A DNA stretch of 64,000 bases from Zygnema circumcarinatum SAG 698-1b (lineage: Eukaryota; Plantae; Zygnematophyceae), in the NCBI GenBank assembly GCA_037447605.1, contig CM074804.1, positions 7,789,909 to 7,853,908 of the forward strand, read 5' to 3'. Position numbers and translations under genes: made by a program. Positions 47,033 to 63,811 of the stretch are shown here, one piece after another; position 1 is the stretch's first letter, and every line of letters starts with the position of its first letter. Below the pieces are notes generated by a model, which made no database searches, was not told the origin of the DNA, and saw nothing but the letters and a program-made list of their open reading frames with translations.

Positions 47033-49823
47033 ATGGCCATGGAGGTTACTCAAATCCTTCTGAACGCGCAGTCACTTGATGCCCAAGTGCGCAAGCTTGC
47101 GGAGGAGAACTTGAAGCAGTTTGAGGAGCAGAACTTCCCGGTTTTTCTGGCATCTTTAGCCTTGGAGGTAGCTAACCCGGAGAAGCCGGATGAATCGAGG
47201 CGGCTGGCAGCCCTGGTCTTGAAGAACGCTGTGGGTGGAAAGGAGCAAGCGACGAAGCAGACCTTTGCGCAGCGATGGCTGGGGATTGACCCCGCTGTAA
47301 GGGCGCAGATTAAGTCGGCTTTGCTGTCGACACTGACTTCTGTGTCACAGAGCGCTCGACGAGGTGCTTCACAAGCAATCTCAAAGATTGCTTCAATTGA
47401 ACTGCCCGTTGGACAGTGGCCTGAGCTGGTGGCAAGCTTGCTTGCGAATATGGGAACTCCAGGGCAGCCGGCTCCTGCTCACGTCAAGCAGAGCACTTTG
47501 GAGGCGTTGGGATATGTTTGTGAAGAAATAGCGGGCACTGATGCTCTTGCACAGGAGCAGGTGAACAGTATATTGACGGCAGTGGTGCAGGGCATGAATC
47601 AGAACGAGAGCGATAATGAAGTGCGCTTGGCAGCAACTCAAGCACTGTTCAACGCACTGGACTTTGCGCACACCAATTTTGAGAATGACATGGAGCGCAA
47701 TTACATCATGACTGTGGTGTGCGAAGCAACCCTTTGTCCAGACCATCGCGTGCGACAGTCTGCTTTCGAATGTTTGGTGGCCATCTCGTCCACCTATTAT
47801 GAGAAGCTCGCTCCATACATGCAGGACATATTTGTAATCACTTCGAAGGCCGTTCGGGAAGATGAGGAATCAGTAGCTCAGCAGGCCATAGAGCTTTGGT
47901 CGTCAATATGCGATGAGGAGATCGACATTCAGGAGGAGTATTCAGGAGATTCGGAAGTTAATAACTATCATTTCATTAAACAAGCTTTGCCTGCATTGGT
48001 CCCTATGCTTCTGGAGACGCTGACGAAGCAAGAGGAGGGCCAAGACGGAGAGGACGATGTTTGGAACCTGTCCATGGCAGGGGGGCGCTGCCTGGGACTG
48101 GTGGCCCGCACTGTGGGAGACGACATCGTGGAGCTGGTGATGCCCTTCGTGCAGGAGAACATCACGAAGTCCGAATGGCGTTGTCGGGAGGCTGCCACCT
48201 ATGCTTTTGGATCTATCTTGGAAGGACCTAGTCTGGAGAAGCTCACTCCCCTAGTGAACATGGCGCTCATTTTCATGCTGAACGCTATGAAGGATGAGAA
48301 CACACATGTGAAGGACACGACTGCCTGGACGTTGGGTCGCATTTTTGAATTTCTCCACGGTCCCAGTGTTGAAACACCAGTTATTACGGCGAACAACCTA
48401 CCGCACATTCTGAATGTACTCCTTGAAAGTATTAAGGATGCACCAAATGTAGCAGAGAAAGTGTGTATTGCCCTTCTCAATCTGGCAGCTGGATACGACC
48501 AGGCGGAGGGCTCTTCTCCTTTGTCTCCCTTTTTTCAGAATATTGTCTCTGCATTGTTGTCCACTTCGGACAGGGACGACGCTCCCGACATGCGCCTTCG
48601 AATCACTGCATATGAGACACTGAACGAGGTGATCCGCTCTTCGACTGACGACACCACTCAGACTGTTCTTCGCCTTGTGCCGGTGATCATGCAGAAGCTG
48701 AGTCAAACTCTCGACATGCAAGTTATGTCGAGCGACGACAGAGAAAAGCAGAGCTCGTTGCAGGGGCTACTTTGCGGAGTTCTGACGGTAATCATTCAGA
48801 AATTGGAAAAGAAAAGCGTAAGCATTGCTCAATATGCGGATCAAATGATGCAGCTGTTTCTGAGAGTTTTTGCCTGTCGGCGTGCCACTGTGCATGAGGA
48901 AGCCATGCTGGCGATCGGCGCGTTAGCCCAGGTTACGGGAGTGGAATTTGGCAAGTACATGCAGGAATTCTACCGTTATTTGGAAATGGGCCTGCAGAAC
49001 TTTGAGGAGTACCAAGTGTGCTCTGTGACAGTGGGGACTGTGGGAGACATTGCCAGAGCTCTTGAGGACAAGATTCTGCCTTACTGTGATGGCATCATGA
49101 CACAGCTGCTGAAGGACTTGTCTAGTAACCAGCTGCATCGAAGTGTGAAGCCTGCCATTTTCGTATGCTTTGGAGATATTGCTCTGGCTATCGGCGAACA
49201 TTTCGAAAAGTATTTACTGTATGCGATGCCTATGCTTCAAAGTGCAGCTGAACTTTCAGCACAACAGATACAGCGAGATGATGAGATGGTGGAGTACAAC
49301 AACCGTTTGCGCGTTGGCATACTTGAGGCCTACACCGGAATTTTCCAGGGTCTCAAGCCAAACAAACAAGAGATCATGCATCAATATTGTGACCATATTC
49401 TGTTTTTCATTGCGAACGTATATCACGACAAGGACAGGTCTGTTTCTGTTTAAAACCTTTGTTCTTTACACCAAGCCAGTGTGTCTGTCTAGCTGGCTGT
49501 CTGTCCCTCTGTTTCTGTCAGTTCACCTTCTATCACGATATGCTGCTATTGAATATGCACTCGTATTGTATTGCTGCACACTTACGAACTGTGTGGCTCT
49601 GCTCAAACTGTTTATGGGTATCAGGGACGACGCAGTGACATCGGCAGCTCTGGAGCTGATGGGCGATGTGGGCGAAGCACTTAAGGCCGCTGCACCGGCC
49701 TTTTTCGCCAAGCACCCCTTCCACAGGGAGTTTCTCGAAGAGGGCTTGACACATGATGATCCGAAAATAAAGGACACATCGAACTGGTCTCGAGACCAAA
49801 TTCTTAACATTAAACGCGATTGA
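47033..49823 (+). CDS. KPNB1: Importin subunit beta-1 (karyopherin beta-1), ~867 aa
   Basis: Exon 47033-49437, GT-AG intron, exon 49625-49823. Motifs: IBN_N (EVTQILLNAQSLD...LKQFEEQNFP...RRLAALVLKN), DDVWNLSMAGGRCLGL, EWRCREAATYAFGSILEGP, LHRSVKPAIFVCFGDIALAIG. Confidence 0.98.
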
Positions 49824-51648: not shown

Positions 51649-54264
51649 ATGACGCCCATGAAGACGCAGGTTTTGAAGGAGGCGCTGCTGGACTGCTTGC
51701 AGTGCCCGCTGTGCGGACGGCTCTGTCAGAAGGCGACAACCATTGTGGAATGTCTCCACACATGTGAGTGATGACTACTGGGATGTTAGCATGGGAAAAG
51801 GGCTGCAGGGTCAGGTTCGAGCGGGAGAGTGTTGGTTCAGCCAGATCATTCCTGAAAATGTTGAAAGTTCAAGGACGAGTTTGAAGCAGACCGGCATATA
51901 TCCAAACAACCATTGGAGATATTGATCAGAAGTGAAGTGTATTCCAAAAGGATTAGAATTGAATTTCCATACGGCTTCATTCGCATTGTGCACGTCGCCT
52001 CCTCTCCACTATTGCACTCTACCATGTCAGATGACGAATGCGAATTTTATCACGAAAAAAGAACAGCTGTCGTGAAAAAGGAAATATCGCAGAGTAGAAG
52101 TTATTGCGCTCATTTTATCATTCGTCAAGTCACCAGACTGGGAGCCTAATGGCCTTTGATTCCTGTTGTAGTATGACTGTTTGCCGTTGGCTTTGCGACT
52201 ATAGCTAGTGTATGATTAAAGATATAGGAATTTAGAATATGCTAACGAAGCTACAGCGATGTATCGTAGATCACACACAGCGCGGTATGGGAGTACTACT
52301 CGATTAATTAATATTCGATTTAGCCGCTAGTTTCGTCGTCAGTTCCTTGTTACTTGGAGACAATTCGATTGCAACAATTTTGTTGGCCTTTATAAGGTTC
52401 GCATGTGTGGAACGTCATACGGTTCGTGCAATTTTTTGTCTTAAGAAATCCGAATCATTTTATTGTGAAGTTTCGTTCTTGTGATTCACAGTCTGCCATC
52501 GATGTATCACAAAGAGGTTGAAGGACGGCCAGGAGAATTTTTGTCCTGAGTGCGATGTCAGTTTAGGCCATCGACCTTTCGAGATGCTCAGGTATGGTCT
52601 CATGTTGTTTGAATTCTTGGAGCTTTGAATTATTAGTCAATTCTCACTTTCAGTCACTGGAGAAAATATAATATCCATTATTAGGACCATCAATGATTGC
52701 AAACACTTTGTTGCAGTTCTCTTTTGTCTATAGTTCACCTGTTGTTTGTCTAGCAGCTTTTTTTTCCCCGGTATGTCTTATTCAGTGCTTCTACATCTTC
52801 GCCAGTCTGTAGGAATTGTTGAGGTTTGATGAGCCACTCCGCTGCCAATGGATGCAGACTCGACCGCCAAATTGGAGCCATTCGAATGAAACTGTTCTCT
52901 GATAAGCTTCAAGAGGCAGAGTCTTGCCGAGTGGGAAGTGGCAAATTCAGGTCCGGCATTCATCGGAGTGTTTATCGCCCCGCTTTTTGCCAGCACGAGA
53001 ATAGAGATTGCGATGGAACTGTTTGGCTTGGCGCCCTGAGCTTATTCTAATGCCAAGTAACCATTAGCTTCATCCTTTCTTATTTTCGTCACTATTCTGT
53101 TGGCTCACTTCAATATTTCCTTTTTTGAAGATAGCTTCGCCTAACTGTTTGTATAGGAGGGGAAAATGCTTATCTCTGACAATACAGTTTCCATCTGCAG
53201 AAGTGCCGACAACCTGGATCAGTCAGACTCAGATTTGGAACAGGAGCTCCATTCCTCTAAGGTGAGCTCCGCCTATTCAGCTTGACAAGGATACTAAAGC
53301 TAGTATCGTTGGAATCAGTGGCACGGTTTGTTGACTGAAGTCACTTGTCCATTCTTCTAAACTCTACCATTATGTTGCTTCTGTGTCCTTACTGCTTATG
53401 CCTTTACATTTCTCTGGTGTTCCAATATTTCAGAAGAAACTAAGGTGAGAGTTAGAGGCAAATCCTGGGACATATTTTGGCGCCTACTCCATCACAGTAG
53501 TGTTGGTAAAGGAAGTCTGCTAACGGACTGGCGATCATTTTGTACTTGCCGTCTGCTTGATGCAGTTTGGAACGAAAAAAGTTGTATTTCTGGTCGAGGT
53601 GAGACCAACACGGAAGTGTGTCTACTTTTTTGTGACTTAAGATTACTTTTCAATACGTGTGCAGATGCAGATTGCAGAGTTAGAAGCCGCTTTGCAAGCG
53701 GAACGGCACTGGCGAATTTCTGCAGAAATGGCAGTTGGATCCCTGGAACACTTCTGGACGAAAAGTTGTGAGCTCTTTCACAAGCTTGTCGCAAATTCTA
53801 GGTATGCCAAGGGGTTTATTAGTGAGGCAAAATCTACAGCGCAAGGTGTTATAGACGACTTAGATATGCAGGAAAACCAGTCAAATAGTGTTCAGAAACT
53901 TAAGAACGTACAAATTCTTCTGGAGAAAGTGGATTGCGTCGGCTCATCAAGCCATTTTGGGTCAGTGGAAGAGATCATAAATGCATTTACTTTCCTTCAA
54001 CAGCAGCAGCGGCAGCAGCAGCAACGCCAACAGGAACAGACTGGCAACGGAGGGCATAGAGATTCAAAGGTAGTTCGAGTGAAGAGAAACTCCAGGGAAC
54101 CTGATCCAGCTAGATACCGAGCTGAAGCTAGGTCATTGTTAAAGCGGCAAAAAGTATTAGACATGAAGGAATTGAGCCAACGCACAAGTGTGCTGGAAAA
54201 GAGAACTCTTTGTGGCAAAGTCCAGAGGTGTCCTAGCAGAAGACGAAGCCCCATTTCTGAGTGA
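51649..54264 (+). CDS. C3HC4 RING protein of DRIP1/2-BMI1 (PCGF) type fused to a coiled-coil/polyQ C-terminus, ~320 aa
   Basis: Exons 51649-51763, 52492-52591, 52858-52950, 53201-53261, 53665-54264 give CLQCPLCGRLCQKATTIVECLHT|FCHRCITKRLKDGQENFCPECDVSLGHRPFEMLR|LDRQIGAIRMKLF, the PCGF/DRIP RING plus its LR-x-D-xx-(L/I) helix. Confidence 0.8.
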
Positions 54265-54910
54265 ACATCTGTCATCCCTGTCATCCTCTCCTATTCCCTT
54301 GAGCCTCCGTGGAACATTTCGAGGGGTAAAACTGCATGACTCGCGTCCTCATCGTTCATCACAATTCCTTCAGTCCGACTGCCAATGAGCGAAAAGGGCT
54401 CTCAAGGGTTTCCTATGAAACGAGGTGGGTGCTCGGTGAGGACGAGGTTCCATCTTCGACGTGTAGTTTAAATCCGTGCCTGACCTTTCTTCACATCCGC
54501 CATTCGCTCCATCTTTGTTCTTTCCTAACTGTCGCTTAGGCAGAGTATTATCTTCTAGAGACTGTCGATGTGTTTAGAAGATCTCTTCTGGAGAAAGCTC
54601 AGTGCCAACTTGTTCATATGACTCAAAGCTGAATCAACCCGTTCGTCCCAAGTCCATCTACCAAGCGATTTGAGTTTGTGAGTGAACCACTCGGAGGCTG
54701 TTGAGGACCCGAACATGTAAAGTGAAATCCAACCAAACATTGCATCCAAAATCCCAACAAAATAGGCACCCAAATGGCATTCAACAATTTGGAAACTGCC
54801 AGGAAGCAGCAGCACAACAGAAGTGTAGGTTCCATTTAACGCCTCAAGGTACTTCCGTGGTCAACAAAGAACACAGAACATGGAACCGCTAATCTGAACC
54901 ACTTTACAAT

Positions 54911-55771
54911 TTACTTCGGCGGAGGCAGCGCCTTGCTCCGCGAAACACCTATCTCGTAGGCGTTCACTTTGGCGGCACAACCGAAGGGCGCTCACCGACT
55001 TGTGGAAGGACTTCTTGGTCGGTGCAACGTTGACAAACATTAAGAGCTTGGCTCCCCCTCCAAAGCACCGCTGCCGAATGCACAGAAAACAAAAAAAAGT
55101 TTTAGCAACAATCTTCTGAGCTCTCAAGCACAAGCATCCCTTGTTATTTAAAAAGCGAAAGGGGTGAAGGAAATTCGCACCTAAACTTTTTTCAGCCTTC
55201 TTTTCAGCTTGGCCGTGGGCCAGGTGTGACAGGGGTGCCACCCTCCGCCGCGCCCTCCTCTTCGACGGACAAGGGGCGTCCCCGGCAAAAGATACGAATA
55301 TCGCCCCCCAGGTCCAATATTTGTTGTTCGCCTTCCAATATTTTTTGCTTGCCTTCCAATATTTTTTGTTCGCCTTCCAATATTTTTTGTTCGCCTTCCA
55401 ATATTTGTTGCCTACCGCGAAGCATTGTATTCTCACCGTGAAGCATCTGACACACCGCATTATTAGATGGCTCTTCAGCATTAAGGAATGCGATATTGCA
55501 CACGCGTCAAACTTGCAGCGCGCGCTTGGCTCTCTGGACTAACCTCACGCAAATCTTGCACTAAGGAAAAATCAAAACTCACCGCACTCGAACGGCTCGC
55601 CACATCAGCCGGCCCAGCGCCAGCCTCGTTCTCACGACGCTTACATTTGTCCGCGTTGCAATTACAATTGGCGGTGCAATTTACTCCTCTCTCCCTACAA
55701 GCGCAAGTACGTTCACACTTTTTATCCTTGCTGCACAGACATCCTCCCGCTTCATTCGTAATCTCAGGCAT
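54911..55771 (-). pseudogene. Chimeric CXC-domain / coiled-coil / kinesin-14 remnant lacking almost the whole motor domain
   Basis: Exon 55771-55544 encodes a 9-Cys CXC. Exon 55446-55204 encodes heptad repeats plus DLGGDIRIFCRGRPL (kinesin-14 neck/beta1) and then stops. Exon 55070-54911 reads RCFGGGAKLLMFVNVAP...SVSALR, then after a 1-nt frameshift AAKVNAYEIGV...* (ATK1/KIFC1-type motor C-end). Confidence 0.85.
55314..55410 (-). repeat. 21-bp coding tandem repeat (4+ copies) encoding ILEG(E/K)Q(K/Q) heptads
   Basis: On the + strand, ttcgccttccaatattttttg is repeated; each unit encodes one coiled-coil heptad on the - strand. Confidence 0.9.
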
Positions 55772-55800
55772 ATTGAATACACAGGGCGCTGTCAAGGCGG

Positions 55801-55839
<39 letters not shown>

Positions 55840-56221
55840 GGCGGGCGGAAGCAGGGCCCAAATTCCGAGTGCCTGCCCGGGCGGCCCCTCCAAGGGATTT
55901 TTTTTACCGTCTGGCTGTGCAGGTCCAAAACCCCGCCCGCCGGCAAATATTGGGCTTGAACACGACGATGTGGGCCGTCCGATCTGGAGGGCTTTGAGAT
56001 TCACAAATTCCACTCGACACGTGGCAGCAAGCTGTGAGATGTGCGCACGCATGTGTGCCTCCACGAGAACATACTTTTAGTTGACTCGACGGGGGAGAAG
56101 GGAGGGGGCTCCCGGGCCGCGGCAACGCTTCAATTTTTACCTGAACGCGGCCGCAAACATTTTTCAACCGACGCGAGCGAACAAACACATTTCATGGCAT
56201 CGGCCGGCTTTTTACCCATTA

Positions 56222-56760
56222 CAGTGGGGGGTCCTCGTATTTACCACCCCAAGGAGTGCGTCCTCAATATTTTCGCCCCAATTTTGCCGAAACCACTTTT
56301 TTGTACGGTAACTTGTGTTAGCCGTACTGTTCGTACTGTTCGTACTGTTCGTACTGCCCGTACTGTCCTTATTATCTGTACTAGCCGTTACGGGCTTACG
56401 CAAAACGCACCTAATCTCCCCGCTCGTGCCGCCGTAAGAGGCGCTCGCTCCTCTCCCCGACTTCTTGACTTAGATACGATACGGTACGATACGATACGGT
56501 CAATACGATACGAAACTCCCCGATGGATAACGACAGTATGTACGACAGTATATGCGTCACGATATGTCACGATACGATACGATGCTAAATGATACAGTAC
56601 GATATGGTACGATATGGTACGGTACGATACGTACGGTTCAACATGAACTTTAACATAATACCGCCCGTCTATTCGTAACACGAACCTTATATATGCAAAT
56701 TTAATATTTTCGCCTCATTTTGCCCGGAACCAGGGTGGAAAATATGAGGACCCCCTACTG
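56222..56760. mobile_element. 539-bp Tc1/mariner-type MITE (family C)
   Basis: 28-bp TIR cagtggggggtcctcgtatttaccaccc vs the reverse complement of gggtggaaaatatgaggaccccctactg (3 mismatches). CAGT termini; TA on both sides (56220-21, 56761-62). Internal (tacga/tacgg)n tracts. Confidence 0.88.
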
Positions 56761-56813
56761 TAGGGGGGGTCAGACATTGACCATGACCGTACTAAATTTC
56801 CGAATTTAGTATA

Positions 56814-58171
56814 CAGTCAACAGTCCTCATATTTTCGCCATGGTTTTGGCAATTATGAGGCGAAAATATTGGTTTTTGCAAATAGAAGGTTCGTGTTACC
56901 AATAGACGGGCGGTATTGTTAGAGTTCATGTTGGACCGTCCGTATCGTACCGTACCTTATCGTACCGTATCGTACCGAGTCGTTTAGTATCGTATCGTAT
57001 CGTGTTGTATCGAAGCCAAGAAGGAGGAAAGACGAGCGAGCGCCTCTTACGGCGGCACGTGCGGGAAGATTCGGTGAGTTTTGCTGAATCCCGTAACGGC
57101 TAGTACAGCAAGTACGGCTAGTACGTCTAGTACGGTTTTTAGGGTTTTGTAGCACAAGATAAGTGGGGTTAAACAAAGACTGCTGAGCTAGCTGCAGGTG
57201 CTGTACGGCCACTCGCGCGTCCGTGCTGAAACTGACGTAGGGTTGGGGTGGTGCTGTGGGTCTGCCTGCAGCATAGAGCTAGGATCCGGGGGATTCAGAG
57301 GTATGCGCAGCGGAAGACGTAGGGATTCTGAAGACGTTCCCACCGGCGGCTGGACTTGATGCGCAAAGAGCCCTTCCTTGGGGACCCTCCTCCCCTGTCC
57401 TCTCCTCGGCTAGTCTCTTAGCTAGGCTTCTAGTGATCATTGGTCATTGAGAGTAATGCAAGGCAAGATAGAGCAAGATAGGGGCTTGGCATAGTGGCAG
57501 CAGAGGGAAAACAGGACACAACTTAGATAAAGGTGGTATTTTGGAAACCCACCCCAGCCAACGGTTGGCTGGGGAATGTCATTACAATGAAATTGTCTTC
57601 TCACTGAAATCTTTGTCTAACTGGGCTGAATGGGACGTCTAAATGCTATCAGCAAGAAGACTCTTTCTCTCTCTCTCTCTCTNNNNNNNNNNAAGCATCA
57701 CTGACATCCCATCTACTTAACACTGACAATAGATCTTGAGTCTTAGCAGTGGCAGTCTCTGATTGGCCAACTGCCCACTGAGAGGCCTGACTGACTACGT
57801 GGAGCCTTCGGATAGGTCAACGAATGATAATCGGCGGCCTTAGGCGGTGTTCCCGAGTGCGCCTTGCTGGATAGTGTGCCGTTCCGTGGACCGCCAACGC
57901 ATGGCGCCGCCTTCTCTTAATCTCCGTTGGCAGCTCCTGGATTCCGTTGATCCGCGACACGGAAGAGGCCTATGTCAAGTACAACTGAACGGACGCGGAT
58001 CCGCCGAACGCAGCTCCGTTACGCTACAGTTTCTAGGGTTTTAGGGGTACGGATAGTACGGATACTACGGCTAACACAGAGTTACCGTACAAAAAGGTGG
58101 TTTCGGCAAAATCGGGGCGAATTTCTTGGGGACGCACTGTACAGGGTGGAAAATATGAGGACTGCTGACTG
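56814..58171. mobile_element. ~1.36-kb Tc1/mariner-type non-autonomous element (inverted family-C relative with a ~0.9-kb internal insert)
   Basis: TIR cagtca(a/g)cagtcctcatattttc at both ends; TA TSD at 56812-13 and 58172-73. Its arms are reverse complements of the family-C element at 56222-56760. It contains an assembly gap, so its length is uncertain. Confidence 0.85.
57683..57692. other. Assembly gap (10 N) after a (CT)n run
   Basis: Run of N characters in the sequence. Confidence 1.
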
Positions 58172-58770
58172 TACTAAAAGTCAAAGTTTCGTGTACGAAT
58201 TCCGAATCGGGATCCGCGGCTTCGCCGGCCCCAGCCGTACCAAAATACGTACCTAGCCAAGGTCCTGGTTAATTCGCCCGACAGTCTTACTAAAATTGAT
58301 TTGGCCATGGTCCCCTGCGTTCTAATTGCCATCCCTAGTCATAAATACATGATGCGCTGGATACTTCACGGCACATCGAACTGGTCAATACATCGCCAAA
58401 TATTTCCACACGATATGCCATTAAATATCGCCACTTCTGAATCCGGTCGAATATCGTATCGAGATATTTCTCTCATGATACTCGATACGATACCCTGTTT
58501 GTGGATACTGTACAGTATGGAGATACCATACGGACGGTACGGTACGGTCGTTCTTATCGCCGTGATTGGCTGGACCAGTACGGTACGCAGGGCGGCATTT
58601 TTAGGGTTGGAAGCCCTGACGCTCTGCAGTTGCAGGTGCAAGAGTTACTACGGTAGCAGCAGAAATTTGAGGGCGAGGGGGAAAGGAGTGCAGGAGCGGA
58701 GGCTGAGGGAGGGAGGGAGGGAGGGAGGGGGAGGGAGAGCAGACTGTCATGCTGATGCTCACACGAAGGC

Positions 58771-61700
58771 ATGGAGAGCCTGGCGCAACTCGAGACTCTT
58801 TGTGAAAGGCTGTACAACTCACGAGATCCTGCGGAACGCTCACACGCCGAGCAGACTCTGCAGTGCTTTTCAGTGAACATCGATTACATTTCGCAGTGCC
58901 AGTACATACTTGACAACTCCACTTCACCTTATGCCCAGCATTTGGCAAGTTCAAGTCTTGTGAAGCAAGTCAGCGAGCATACTTTGGCTGTACAACTACG
59001 TCTGGATATAAGTAAGTGGTTTCGGACAACCGTTGGTCCACTCTCTTCTGCTTGCTCAAATCAATGTTCGGGAATGGAGTCTCAGTGGGGCATTGCAGCA
59101 AGCTGGCTCGAGGATTACTAGTTCTTATGCCAAAGAGTCTATTCTCCCTTTCCTCAGTTACATCAAAGAGATGAAGAAGCGTCTGCATTCTGCAGGAAAT
59201 TACGTAATCGCCTTTCTTGCAAAGAAGGGCCCGGAGACACAGCCATTTGTCACCTCTTCGTTGATCCAGTTGCTCTGCCGTGTTACCAAGCTAGGATGGT
59301 ACGACGACGACCGCTTCAGAGATGTCGTGAAGGAGTCTATGAACTTTCTCACACAGGTATGGTTAGAATTAAGTACGGGCAGAAGAGTATTGCGCCAAGT
59401 GGAGTATAGAGATGAGCTGTTAACACGGCCTTCTTGTTCCACGTCAATTTGTTGAATATATGGCATTTTATCAGATAGTTATCAGATATAGGTATTGAGA
59501 TTGAGCAATAGTCGTAACTTTTCCTTTCCTTGAGCAAAACATTACCTTAAGAAGTCTAAAGTATATTGGAAATCCTTTGCAGCATCTCCTCTTTATTTAC
59601 ACAATTGTATTGCAAGTCAAGCTGAACTTTCAAGATGCAAGCTCAATGGAGAACCTTGATTAAGAAATTTCAGCATTAACTTGATCCCACTCATCGGCAG
59701 CCACTTGGTGATGCTTTATAAACATTCAAAGCTTTAGGGATATCTTGTTATAGTGCCAACATTCAACTCTTTGTTGGTTTAAGTCCAACCACACGTTTTT
59801 GGCGTACAGGCAACTGTGGAGCACTTCTATATTGGCTTAAAAATTCTCAACCAGCTGGTGGCGGAAATGAATCAGGCAGGTCTAACCTTATGGCCACACA
59901 AGTGACTTCAAACCCCTGACTTCCTAAATGGGTTGAGGACACACTGTATACCTGATCAGCAGATCTCGTGTCTTCCAGATAGTTTATATCTGGACGTCGT
60001 GGCCATGCTCGTTTTAGTCGTAAACACCATTTGATCGGAGAGTGGCAACCAAGAATTTTCATGCAATATCCTAAGTCATTTTTTACCTTTTGCTTGCAGG
60101 CCAACCCAGGACGCTCTTTGACACATCACAGAAAGACTGCCTGTTCCTTTCGTGACCTATCTTTGTTTCAAATTTTTCAAATTTCCTTGACATCCCTAAG
60201 GCAGCTTCAGACTGATGGTCAGTGATTCATCTATGCATGCGCATGTAGGGCTGGTTGCTGGTAGTGATGTAGTCAACTATCTCCTTTCATGGTTGATGAG
60301 TTTAGTGGCAAGCAAATGCAGTTCATGCGCAACTGTATGACCTAGGATATACTAGTTTCCTTTGTATTGTAAAGTATACATATCTGAAGTTGAGATAGAT
60401 TTGACTTCGTTTAGATTTGACTTTGTTCCTTTGTTTTATGACAGCTGATGATAGGTTGCGCGAGCAAGCCGTTGTCCTCGCTCTTAAATGCCTCTCCTTC
60501 GATTTTGTGGGCACATCTTTGGACGAAAGCTCCGAAGATCTGGGAACTATCCAGGTTCATACTCACGTGCCCCCTTTTAATGACATGAAGGCAAATCAAT
60601 CAATAATTGTCAATCATCACTCGGTTGGTTTCTTTGAGCCAGCCAAGTCGGTTTTGTTATTGCAGTTGGTGGAATTGTGATCTAGCTAGTTCTTGTTCTT
60701 GTGATTCACAAGATACTGGAACTAAAACCGTGACAGCAACTCTTATTGTTTCCAGATTCCATCTTCTTGGAGGCCCCTTTTGGAAGATTCTGCGACTATG
60801 CAGTTGTTTTTTGACTATTACGCCAAAACTAAGCCACCCTTGTCAAATCAGGTAAGTTTCTTTTTATTGCTAATGATGCTTATAGGAATGCGGTTGAAAC
60901 TCCTTCATGGTGACATTACCTGGATTTCTATGCTGATATTCTTCCTATCTAATCTGTCTTGCAAGTATACTACATAGGTATAACTTTTGCAATGAGTTAC
61001 GACTTGCTTTATATGCATGGCTAGGATTGGAGAAAGTCATGTTTCATTTTTTTTTTATTCACTATCTAGATCCTCGGTATGACAAAGCCTTGATATAGTT
61101 GAACTGTCCTGTGAGCTTTATTTGTTGTTCCATAATGCTCGCACTGTTGCAATCATCTGTAGATCATACAGTATAGGTATCTTCATTTTATTAGGAGTGT
61201 ATCAAGGCTATAATTGTGGATAGGAAATTTAAAACTGATTTGTTTGACAATAAAAAAATGGTGAAAATGATTCATTATCGCAATGCAGTGATTTTCTCAG
61301 TCCATAAGCTATTTCTGTGTTATGAATACTTCTTGGGTAACCTGCTGAGATGTAATTGATGGAGGTACAGTAGTTGTTGCTAAATTTTGGCTCTGCTCAA
61401 TTTTATCGTTAATAAAGTCATTGCCGGAATAATTCCAGTGGGTTTACCTTCTGAGTGCAGGCGTTAGAGTGCCTCGTGCGCCTTGCATCTGTCAGAAGGT
61501 CATTGTTTTCTGGAGAAGCGGAGCGCTTGAAATTTTTGGGTCATCTTATGAGTGGAACGAGAGAAATTCTTCGCACCCAGCAAGGTGAGTTGAGGATGAG
61601 CTTGTTGACAGGCTGGGAAATTGCTCTCAGTTTACTCATCATTGGTTGGTCTTCCAGAACGTTGTGGAATGAAGATATCGCCTGGAGCATTGCTGGTGAT

Positions 61701-63811
61701 TCTGACCTTTGGCTATCCTTGTTTCTGCAAAAGTGGAAATCTGCTTTCTTGCTAGGCTACGGATATCAATTCTTAAATCTCTTTTCTATACGTAGATCTT
61801 ACCACACTCTGGGTTGCAGAGAAGGTTTTATGCATCAGTATTTTCTTTAACTTACGTGGTCACTCACAAATCTGCAAAGGTGCCAGGGCTAGGCGAGCAT
61901 GAGAATTACCATGAGTATTGCCGCCTCCTAGGACGGCTGAAGACAAATTATCAGGTGAGCATAGGAGTTTGGCTGCGGGGGTGCGTCCTACTCTGACTAT
62001 TTCTGATTAGTGGAATGAGTGGCCTGGTTCATATTGTCCGCTCTCTCGCATAGGCTGATCGTAAGTTGAGTTCTGTGCATTGGCTGCTATCGTGTAGCAT
62101 GTGGCATGTGTGGATGATGAGAGATCATAGTGCAGCTGCATCCTCATGAATAGTTGGTCGGGGGAGGGGCTGAATGAGTCTATTTGAATTCATGCAATTG
62201 AATGCCCATTTTTTTTAGCTGATTGAGATACAAGTGGAATGAATGTGAATAGCTGTCGGAGCTTGTAAACGTGGAGAATTACGGCGACTGGGTTCGACTT
62301 GTAGCTGAATTCACCATTCAATCACTTCAGTCATGGCAGGTGAGCGGAGCTATCCACTGTGTAGCGAGAGTCTAGTCGGAGGAGCATTTTGTCCAGCAAT
62401 TGTCAATTGTTTCCGTTTTCTTCTCCATGTTGAGGACCTCTCCTTTGTTGGTATCAAGGTTAATGTGGGCCAGTCAGACTGGAGCACCACGATTATGTTT
62501 GCAATCACAATGTTTAGCTAGGTGCAATATTGAAAACAGGGCCTTGCCAGCAACATTCATTTCCCAACGAGGAGCTTGCCAAGGAACTTAGTTGTACTAT
62601 CGTAAGGAGCTTTAGGGGCTTTAGTGACTTTAGAGGCTCATTAGAGGCTTTGTATGCAACGACAACGAAGCCAAGCTGGGAACGTTGAGCTGTTGCTCTA
62701 GAGTTCTGAAGTGCTGTGGTGGTTATACGTAAATTCCAGCTTAATGCCACCTTGGAGTTCTCTTATGTCTACCAAGAGCTACGAATGGTTTTCTATTCGT
62801 TTAAAAATGGGGAAGATGCCTGAGAGGTGAAAGTTTTGTGGGTCGTTGTGGATGGCTGCAGTGGGCAAGCGGCAGTGTTTACTACCTGCTTGGGCTATGG
62901 TCCAGGCTTGTCTCGTCCATGCCGTATCTGAAGAGTGACTCGCCGAGCCTTTTGGAAAGTTATGTGCCTAAAATCACAGAAGCGTACATTACCTCAAGGC
63001 TAGACTCTGTACAGGTATACATTCGACGTCTTTGACGTTTCCTGTGGATGCTTCTAAATATCTTGATTGTGAGTTTGGCTGTGCATGTTGTTTGACCGAA
63101 GCAACCGGTTAGCCTGCTCCAACTCTGTCGTGTAACATGGGGTCTTTCCTTAGTCAGCCTTGTATATCTCTCAAGTGCTGTAGCTTCCCCGTGCGGATGA
63201 TGTTTTGGACTCCATTCGCATGCTTTATTTTGCTAGAAATCAACCCAATCCAATGTATGGTGCGTTCAAACCTTACGAAGATTTAGACTTCTTGTTTCTG
63301 CAGGCTGTGCTTCAAAACAACATCCCTGAAGATCCTTTGGACAATGAGGAGCAACTGCAAGACCAACTAGACAGTCTACCATATCTGTGCCGGTTTCAGG
63401 CAAGCAATTTTGGCCAAATCCTATATTTATCTCCTTCGGTGAATGTGAAGCCAACACATGGCAGCTGTAAATGCAGCTTAATGTGGGCATCGTCGTCTGA
63501 GGTCATTCCAATAGTTTGTGATGACTTCTGTGATGGAGGAGGCTTTTTTGTTTCATTCGTTGACCACAAAGAAATGCTTGTGGCCATTGGCAAAGCCTCG
63601 ATTGCTATCAGAGTCGTCTCCTATGATTCGTCGAATGGAGGCAATTTCCTGTGATTTGTACTTTCATGATTGTAATGCTTATGCAATTTTTCATGTAAGA
63701 TTTTTTTTCCGTTAGATTGCCAACATTCGTTCGCCTTCACTGTTTTTGCAGTATGAGAAAACAAGCAAGTACATTATCGCCCTCCTGGAGCCCGTTTTAC
63801 AAGCTTTCACT
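58771..63811 (+). CDS. XPO7: Exportin-7 / RanBP16-family karyopherin, 5' part (continues past the window end)
   Basis: Exons: 58771-59011, 59196-59356, 59810-59875, 60100-60217, 60445-60554, 60756-60851, 61461-61584, 61887-61954, 62253-62339, 62862-63014, 63304-63399, 63752-63811. Motifs: MESLAQLETLCERLYNS...[93 protein letters not shown]. Confidence 0.96.

Follow-up and report, generated by a model that had tools for sequence, protein, structure and literature searches.

Is the short reading frame at this locus, which joins a cysteine-rich exon to the neck of a kinesin-14, a new gene without a motor, or is it what remains of a broken motor gene? The stretch of DNA that was analysed, hereafter the window, is 64 kb long. 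Its sequence and open reading frames (ORFs) place all parts of the locus on the minus strand: a Cys-rich exon that begins with ATG, an intron, an exon that holds a repeat and a kinesin neck, a spacer, and a terminal kinesin-14 exon that is frameshifted. The three modules that a first-pass annotation of this DNA had described were all recovered on this strand, with the same coordinates and peptides. We propose that the locus is probably a kinesin-14 paralogue of the KIFC1/Ncd/ATK type, which has a C-terminal motor, disabled by an internal genomic deletion and beginning to decay.

Architecture of the locus

Read 5' to 3' on the minus strand, the locus comprises a (TC)18 tract, an ATG at 55771, exon 1, an intron, exon 2, which runs to the TGA at 55204-55206, a spacer and the last exon. 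The features are as follows.

55803 to 55838, no strand: (GA)18 microsatellite, (TC)18 on the strand of the gene, about 30 bp upstream of the ATG (Tandem Repeats Finder)
55583 to 55771, minus strand: exon 1, 63 codons (76 if the donor at 55543 is used), with the ATG at 55771
55447 to 55582, minus strand: putative intron 1, 136 nt, GTGAGT to CAG, phase 0, GC 47%
55313 to 55410, minus strand: in-frame 21-bp tandem repeat, 4.7 copies, 92% matches (Tandem Repeats Finder)
55270 to 55317, minus strand: kinesin-14 neck-motor junction and first motor strand, LDLGGDIRIFCRGRPL (Ncd alignment, Pfam and motif scan)
55204 to 55269, minus strand: GC-rich tail of exon 2, SVEEEGAAEGGTPVTPGPRPS, 21 residues, ending with TGA at 55204-55206, GC 68%
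55071 to 55203, minus strand: AT-rich intron-like spacer, 133 nt, ending with a T-rich tract and CAG, with no similarity elsewhere in the window
54981 to 55070, minus strand: terminal kinesin exon, first frame, RCFGGGAKLLMFVNVAPTKKSFHKSVSALR (PDB KIFC1 5wdh_A and Pfam Kinesin)
54977 to 54980, minus strand: frameshift site, TTGT, four bases where a Phe codon is expected in L-R-F-A
54911 to 54976, minus strand: terminal kinesin exon, second frame, AAKVNAYEIGVSRSKALPPPK, with TAA at 54911-54913

The ORFs on the opposite strand and downstream of the locus have no family match, and Rfam and tRNA scans of the window found nothing. Look-ups of the exact products of four ORFs gave none on record.

Two ends of a kinesin-14 motor

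The last exon has its closest relatives among kinesin-14 motors. In a search of the PDB it matched residues 336-371 of human KIFC1 (5wdh_A) with an E value of 1.2e-4, followed by Ncd and Kar3; all of its ten highest-scoring PDB matches come from KIFC1, Ncd and Kar3, and other kinesin families score lower. The Pfam Kinesin profile aligns to this exon over positions 289-323 of 327 (E = 0.005), with a score of 16.2 bits for the kinesin motor domain (PF00225) against a gathering cut-off of 29.3. One extra base is found at 54977-54980, the Phe that would be expected there being derived from the alignments to KIFC1 and Ncd, which read LRFA. When the exon is read across the frameshift, the stop comes 22 codons after the LRF position. 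The first-pass annotation had placed a frameshifted ATK1/KIFC1-like terminal exon about 130 nt beyond exon 2, and the 133-nt spacer and the extra base agree with this description. The 26-residue tail after the frameshift is too short for significance alone and has no PDB or Pfam match; AAKVNAYEIGVSRSKALPPPK presumably belongs to kinesin-14, as judged by its position and by the C-terminal consensus. A word search with the ORF of the last exon gave no candidates, its length window excluding full-length kinesins for such short queries.

The other end of the motor is found in exon 2, where LGGDIRIFCRGRPL follows the 21-bp repeat and the frame then ends at the TGA. The neck and the first motor strand align to residues 35-72 of Ncd in the PDB search (E = 0.08), and the end of exon 2 matches positions 12-35 of the 155 positions of Pfam Microtub_bd (E = 0.12). 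The segment LDLGGDIRIFCRGRPL has the kinesin-14 neck pattern (..GN-IRV-F/Y-CR-x-RP), with GD at the junction instead of GN. The kinesin-14 neck that had been proposed for exon 2 is thus found in the alignment to the Ncd neck and first strand. A metagenome scan with exon 2 confirmed nothing.

Each of these kinesin matches is modest alone. Jointly, at the level of sequence, they are the signature of a C-terminal kinesin-14 motor, because the two pieces belong to one family, are collinear on one strand, stand 200 nt apart in the right order (the start and the end of the motor), and are followed by a stop 22 codons after LRF. Only about 30 and about 50 residues of kinesin are retained in the two pieces. 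About 265 motor residues would be expected where the spacer now stands, and its 133 nt could encode no more than 44. Motif searches in all six frames of the 64-kb window found no P-loop (GQTxxGKT/S), switch I (SSRSH) or switch II (DLAGSE), and the absence of these elements, which the first-pass annotation had claimed, holds. Kinesin-14s normally have a long stalk and tail ahead of the neck. At this locus only about 110 codons precede the neck, and a long stalk and tail are absent in addition to the motor core.

Loss of the motor exons from the assembly, by collapse or mis-joining, would also leave such a gap, and the extra base of the last exon would then be a consensus error. A 10-N scaffold gap is located 1.9 kb away, within a nest of miniature elements (the MITE nest, described below), and single-base indels are common residual assembly errors. 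However, the junction lies in contiguous, unique and non-repetitive sequence, the sole N run of the window being the one at 57683-57692; for a collapse, repeats would have to flank the junction on either side, and there are none. The short region ahead of the neck is, moreover, also atypical for a complete kinesin-14. We regard an artefact of assembly as highly improbable.

The repeat of exon 2 and its predicted helix

The 21-bp repeat encodes the heptad (Q[QK]ILEG[EK]), with QQ in the outer units and QK in the inner ones. The differences between the units all change amino acids: Q to K or the reverse, E to K or the reverse, and, in the partial unit at the end, DLG in place of EGE. This last unit leads directly into the kinesin-14 neck, and the minisatellite is probably a young in-frame expansion of the last heptad of the neck. 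The first-pass annotation had named this segment a coiled coil made of 21-bp repeats. The repeat is real, but a canonical coiled coil, with hydrophobic residues at positions a and d, is not what the Q-K-I-L-E-G-E unit provides: QKILEGE has a Gly in each turn of seven residues, and the adjacent I-L pair is its only one. What is predicted instead is a long helix. In a single-sequence AlphaFold model of the monomer, residues 3-50 of exon 2 form a single extended helix with pLDDT values up to 99, and this helix continues up to the neck-motor junction.

The cysteine-rich exon

Exon 1 begins with MPEITNEAGG, which is followed by a stretch of 33 residues with nine Cys, a basic KRRE segment, and a linker rich in Ala, Gly and Ser. 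The nine-Cys peptide, CLCSKDKKCERTCACRERGVNCTANCNCNADKC, is encoded at 55643-55741 on the minus strand and has the spacing C-x-C-x5-C-x3-C-x-C-x6-C-x3-C-x-C-x4-C. In a six-frame translation of the window, it is the sole stop-free stretch of 33 residues outside microsatellites that has at least nine Cys, and it is also the only match in the window to a relaxed CXC spacing pattern.

This exon had been described as an intact exon with a CXC pattern like that of kinesin-4/KIF4 tails or tesmin domains. The nine-Cys pattern and the intact exon are present, but the CXC label is a matter of resemblance. The Pfam profile of the Tesmin/TSO1 CXC domain (TCR, PF03638) aligns at positions 3-35 of 38 to residues 10-44 of exon 1 with an E value of 0.85, which is not significant, and with 10.4 bits against a gathering cut-off of 23.5. 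The nearest neighbours of exon 1 in a protein language model are MSL2-CXC, TCR and CSRNP_N, with low scores of 0.75-0.77 (0.76-0.77 for the MSL2-CXC and TCR clusters). The AlphaFold model of exon 1 is of low confidence, with a mean pLDDT of 57.7. By this resemblance, the nine-Cys spacing is similar, not identical, to that of a putative three-zinc CXC cluster, and the exon is a candidate for metal binding.

Searches for relatives of exon 1 were blank. The PDB gave no match, even at E = 10. An exhaustive HMMER search of 1.84 billion representative proteins returned a single match, a 969-residue tandem-repeat artefact, and across these representatives and the PDB exon 1 has no measurable similarity to any kinesin or CXC protein. 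A word search with the ORF of exon 1 found no candidates, and a metagenome scan with this exon confirmed nothing. As a control, the importin-beta of the window has a best identity of only 78%, from which it follows that the source species is absent from the protein collections. For this reason the missing relatives of exon 1, like the other blank searches, carry little weight; a Cys-rich domain of this small size, if only 40-50% identical to its relatives, would fail to be significant in a library of 1.84 billion proteins.

Wheat kinesins have CXC domains only in group A of kinesin-4, and none in kinesin-14 (PMC11660758). Our survey of the literature and databases, this wheat report included, contains no described family of CXC-kinesin-14 proteins, and we have no evidence that such a family exists.

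Upstream of exon 1, the (TC)18 tract is probably part of the 5' UTR or the promoter. An AG located about 14 nt upstream of the ATG and after this tract (..ccttgacag|CGCCC.., within 55772-55802 on the minus strand) is a plausible acceptor, and the Cys-rich exon might be a second exon behind an intron in the 5' UTR.

Possible joining of exons 1 and 2

Two donors can be joined to the same acceptor, ..GTGTCAG|, after which exon 2 starts at 55446. The stronger donor, GCG|GTGAGT at 55582, gives the putative intron of 136 nt and a product of 143 residues. The alternative donor, GAG|GTTAGT at 55543, gives an intron of 97 nt, also of phase 0, and a product of 156 residues; this is the intron and the open product that the first-pass annotation had reported. 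Exons 1 and 2 have no lesion, and with these canonical phase-0 splice sites they form an open frame of 143-156 codons from the ATG. An open join discriminates little, because more than 20 GT/AG pairs yield an open product when length and openness are computed. Moreover, the ORFs of exons 1 and 2 overlap by 20 nt in different frames, and a single indel, instead of an intron, could equally be the cause of this frame split. For comparison, the one checkable intron in the window, that of the importin-beta gene, is about 185 nt in length, has GT..AG ends, and has a GC content of 43%. The codon-usage score is highest in the proposed exon frames, yet it is near zero there, while it is 0.38 for importin-beta.

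Exons 1 and 2 might be a live gene that encodes a short protein of 143-156 residues, composed of a head that resembles a zinc cluster, a basic patch, a long helix and a stub of the neck; such a product might bind DNA or metal through its head, or pair with intact kinesin-14s at their neck helices. The intact ORF with canonical GT..AG ends in phase 0, a nine-Cys pattern that is exceptional within the window, the confidently predicted helix over residues 3-50 of exon 2, and a TC-rich tract upstream, as in many plant 5' regions, are what such a gene would have. On the other hand, no search found a relative of exon 1 and the metagenome scan with exon 2 was blank, exon 1 falls short of significance against the Pfam CXC profile, and its fold model is of low confidence. 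The heptad has a Gly in every repeat and no hydrophobic a/d core, codon usage gives a weak signal, and the protein would end in about 20 residues read through from a truncated motor exon. We consider a live gene of this kind unlikely, and the proposal of a new mini-protein without a motor, acting as a dominant-negative dimeriser or as a DNA- or Fe-S-binding protein, found no support beyond the intact short ORF. It is improbable that the 143-156-residue product is a motor-less regulator, in which a lineage-specific zinc-cluster head would be fused to a kinesin-14 neck helix and full-length kinesin-14s would be paired with or tethered to DNA or chromatin. It is equally improbable that the locus is instead all that is left of a so far undescribed kinesin-14 family of streptophyte algae, with a CXC head at the N-terminus.

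Neighbouring genes and the MITE nest

The MITE nest (56215-58173) is located upstream of the gene and starts 444 bp from the ATG, in agreement with the distance of about 450 bp given earlier. It consists of nested inverted repeats, in which the outer arms, 56220-56313 and 58080-58173, are 94 nt long with 82% identity, and the inner arms are 148 nt and 96 nt. Tandem repeats of 5 nt and 9 nt (GATAC and CGTACTGTT) are abundant in the arms. Directly after a (CT)n microsatellite at 57661-57682, the nest is interrupted by the scaffold gap of 10 N at 57683-57692, and its inner structure and length may for this reason be incomplete.

Three other coding regions are found around the locus and the nest. 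The importin-beta-1 gene (47033-49793, plus strand) has one exon of 806 codons, which an intron of about 185 nt (GTCTGT..TATCAG) separates from a short last exon. The highest identities of its product are 78% to a Logan contig (SRR8128908), 74% to mosses (Sphagnum), and 71% to Closterium, Mesotaenium and Chara. In Closterium sp. NIES-67, no kinesin was found near importin-beta when synteny around this gene was inspected. The exportin-7 gene (58771-63654, plus strand), with IBN_N at about 58846 and TPR_XPO7 at about 63300, is divergent from the kinesin locus, with the MITE nest between them. An ORF of 201 codons (53659-54264, plus strand), which matches no Pfam family and has a Gln-rich tract encoded by a CAG repeat at 54001-54023, is oriented towards the 3' end of the locus; it may be the last exon of a neighbouring gene.

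Within 52500-59000, all inverted repeats are located in the MITE nest, except for pairings of the (GA)18 and (CT)n tracts. A capture of the Pack-MULE type was considered and rejected, as no terminal inverted repeats flank the remnant and it has no sequence in common with the MITE nest. The first-pass annotation had suggested that the nest drove the rearrangement. This suggestion is not sustained: the nest is on the upstream side of the ATG, the remnant is not bordered by inverted repeats, and the junction has no sequence in common with the nest.

The locus could also be a chimera made by capture of fragments or by exon shuffling, in which a foreign Cys-rich exon, possibly a tail exon of the CXC type found in kinesin-4, was joined to two pieces of a kinesin-14, possibly through repair of a DNA break or through a transposon; a parental CXC-kinesin-14 would then never have existed. 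Such an origin would fit the survival of only about 30 and about 50 residues of kinesin, the missing stalk ahead of the neck, the MITE nest 444 bp away, and the restriction of CXC domains in wheat to kinesin-4 group A, outside kinesin-14 (PMC11660758). However, neither inverted nor direct repeats flank the remnant, which shares nothing with the nest, and exon 1 has no measurable similarity to a kinesin or a CXC protein. Furthermore, the spacer resembles the end of the last exon's own intron, and a simple internal deletion is more economical. A chimeric origin appears decidedly unlikely to us.

Probable origin by internal deletion

The composition of the locus changes where the motor is interrupted. 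The stretch that runs from the neck to the TGA has a GC content of 68%, the spacer one of 38% and the last exon one of 57.5%, and the drop falls exactly at the stop codon. The spacer, with its T-rich tract and CAG, can be read as a remnant of the last intron, and a genomic deletion is the simplest reading of this GC drop together with the intron-like end of the spacer. A relic of a broken kinesin, one of the two possibilities raised by the first-pass annotation, fits the premature stop at the boundary between GC-rich and AT-rich sequence, the +1 frameshift and the lack of relatives.

The deletion would have extended from just after the first motor strand, in the first motor exon, to a position 133 nt upstream of the last exon, in the last intron. 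It would have removed the P-loop, switch I, switch II and the microtubule-binding elements, that is, about 265 of roughly 330 motor residues. We infer the breakpoints, the order of events and the lack of function: the left breakpoint would lie inside the first motor exon, at about 55204-55212, at the 3' end of the exon 2 tail, and the right one inside the last intron. Translation from the neck would then enter the intron remnant and stop at once at the TGA at 55204-55206. The last exon, being untranslated afterwards, would be free to decay and may thus have acquired its one-base insertion. The Cys-rich exon 1 would be either the parent gene's own head, specific to this lineage, or an unrelated exon that became joined to the kinesin fragment.

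The kinesin pieces are still well conserved, which means that the event was recent or that the frameshift is an assembly error. The restriction of the indel to the last exon is the pattern expected of a short gene that is still in use, yet it is uninformative: under uniform decay, the chance that one indel falls in the last exon and not in exons 1 and 2 is about 160/592 = 0.27, which is not significant either way.

A processed retrocopy was ruled out, as the intron-like spacer, with its T-rich tract and CAG, and the putative intron 1 are both retained.

If the locus is a deletion relic, it is an ordinary one, a record of turnover within the kinesin-14 family, which is expanded in this streptophyte alga, and a warning to annotators that a clean two-exon ORF can here be the stump of a motor gene. 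If the stump is expressed, a CXC-type head on a kinesin-14 neck would be a combination not found in the literature or databases, and motor-less kinesin derivatives that keep a dimerising neck could be natural inhibitors.

Comparison with known systems

The kinesin pieces of the locus resemble kinesin-14A, which includes animal KIFC1/HSET, Drosophila Ncd, yeast Kar3 and plant ATK1/ATK5. As in these proteins, a helical neck is directly followed by G-x-IR[VI]FCR-x-RP, and GG-x-K-x-LMFVN[IV]-x-P ... LRFA forms the last segment of the motor. When the last exon is read across its frameshift, the stop follows about 22 residues later, which would correspond to a C-terminal motor. Furthermore, the best PDB matches of both pieces are all kinesin-14 chains. 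In contrast to kinesin-14A, the locus lacks about 265 motor residues, including the P-loop, switch I and switch II, as well as the long stalk or tail; its junction has GD instead of the usual GN, its last exon is frameshifted, and it has a Cys-rich head. To our knowledge, a Cys-rich head has been reported in no described kinesin-14.

The Cys-rich head can be compared with the Tesmin/TSO1-type CXC domain (PF03638) and the related Zn3Cys9 modules of MSL2, of the pre-SET region of EZH2, and of the tails of plant kinesin-4 group A. The likeness consists of nine Cys within 33 residues and of three C-x-C pairs at similar spacing. The third Cys of exon 1 is, however, shifted by one position, and its last spacer has 4 residues, while that of tesmin-type CXC domains has 2. 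The position also differs, as the nine-Cys cluster is N-terminal to a frame derived from kinesin-14, whereas the CXC domains reported in plant kinesins are those of kinesin-4 (PMC11660758).

As a whole, the locus is similar to unprocessed pseudogenes of the deletion type, with which it shares the retention of intron-like sequence, an internal deletion, a premature stop, and a frameshift downstream of this stop. It differs from them in that its two 5' exons are intact and can be spliced, so that a truncated product is possible.
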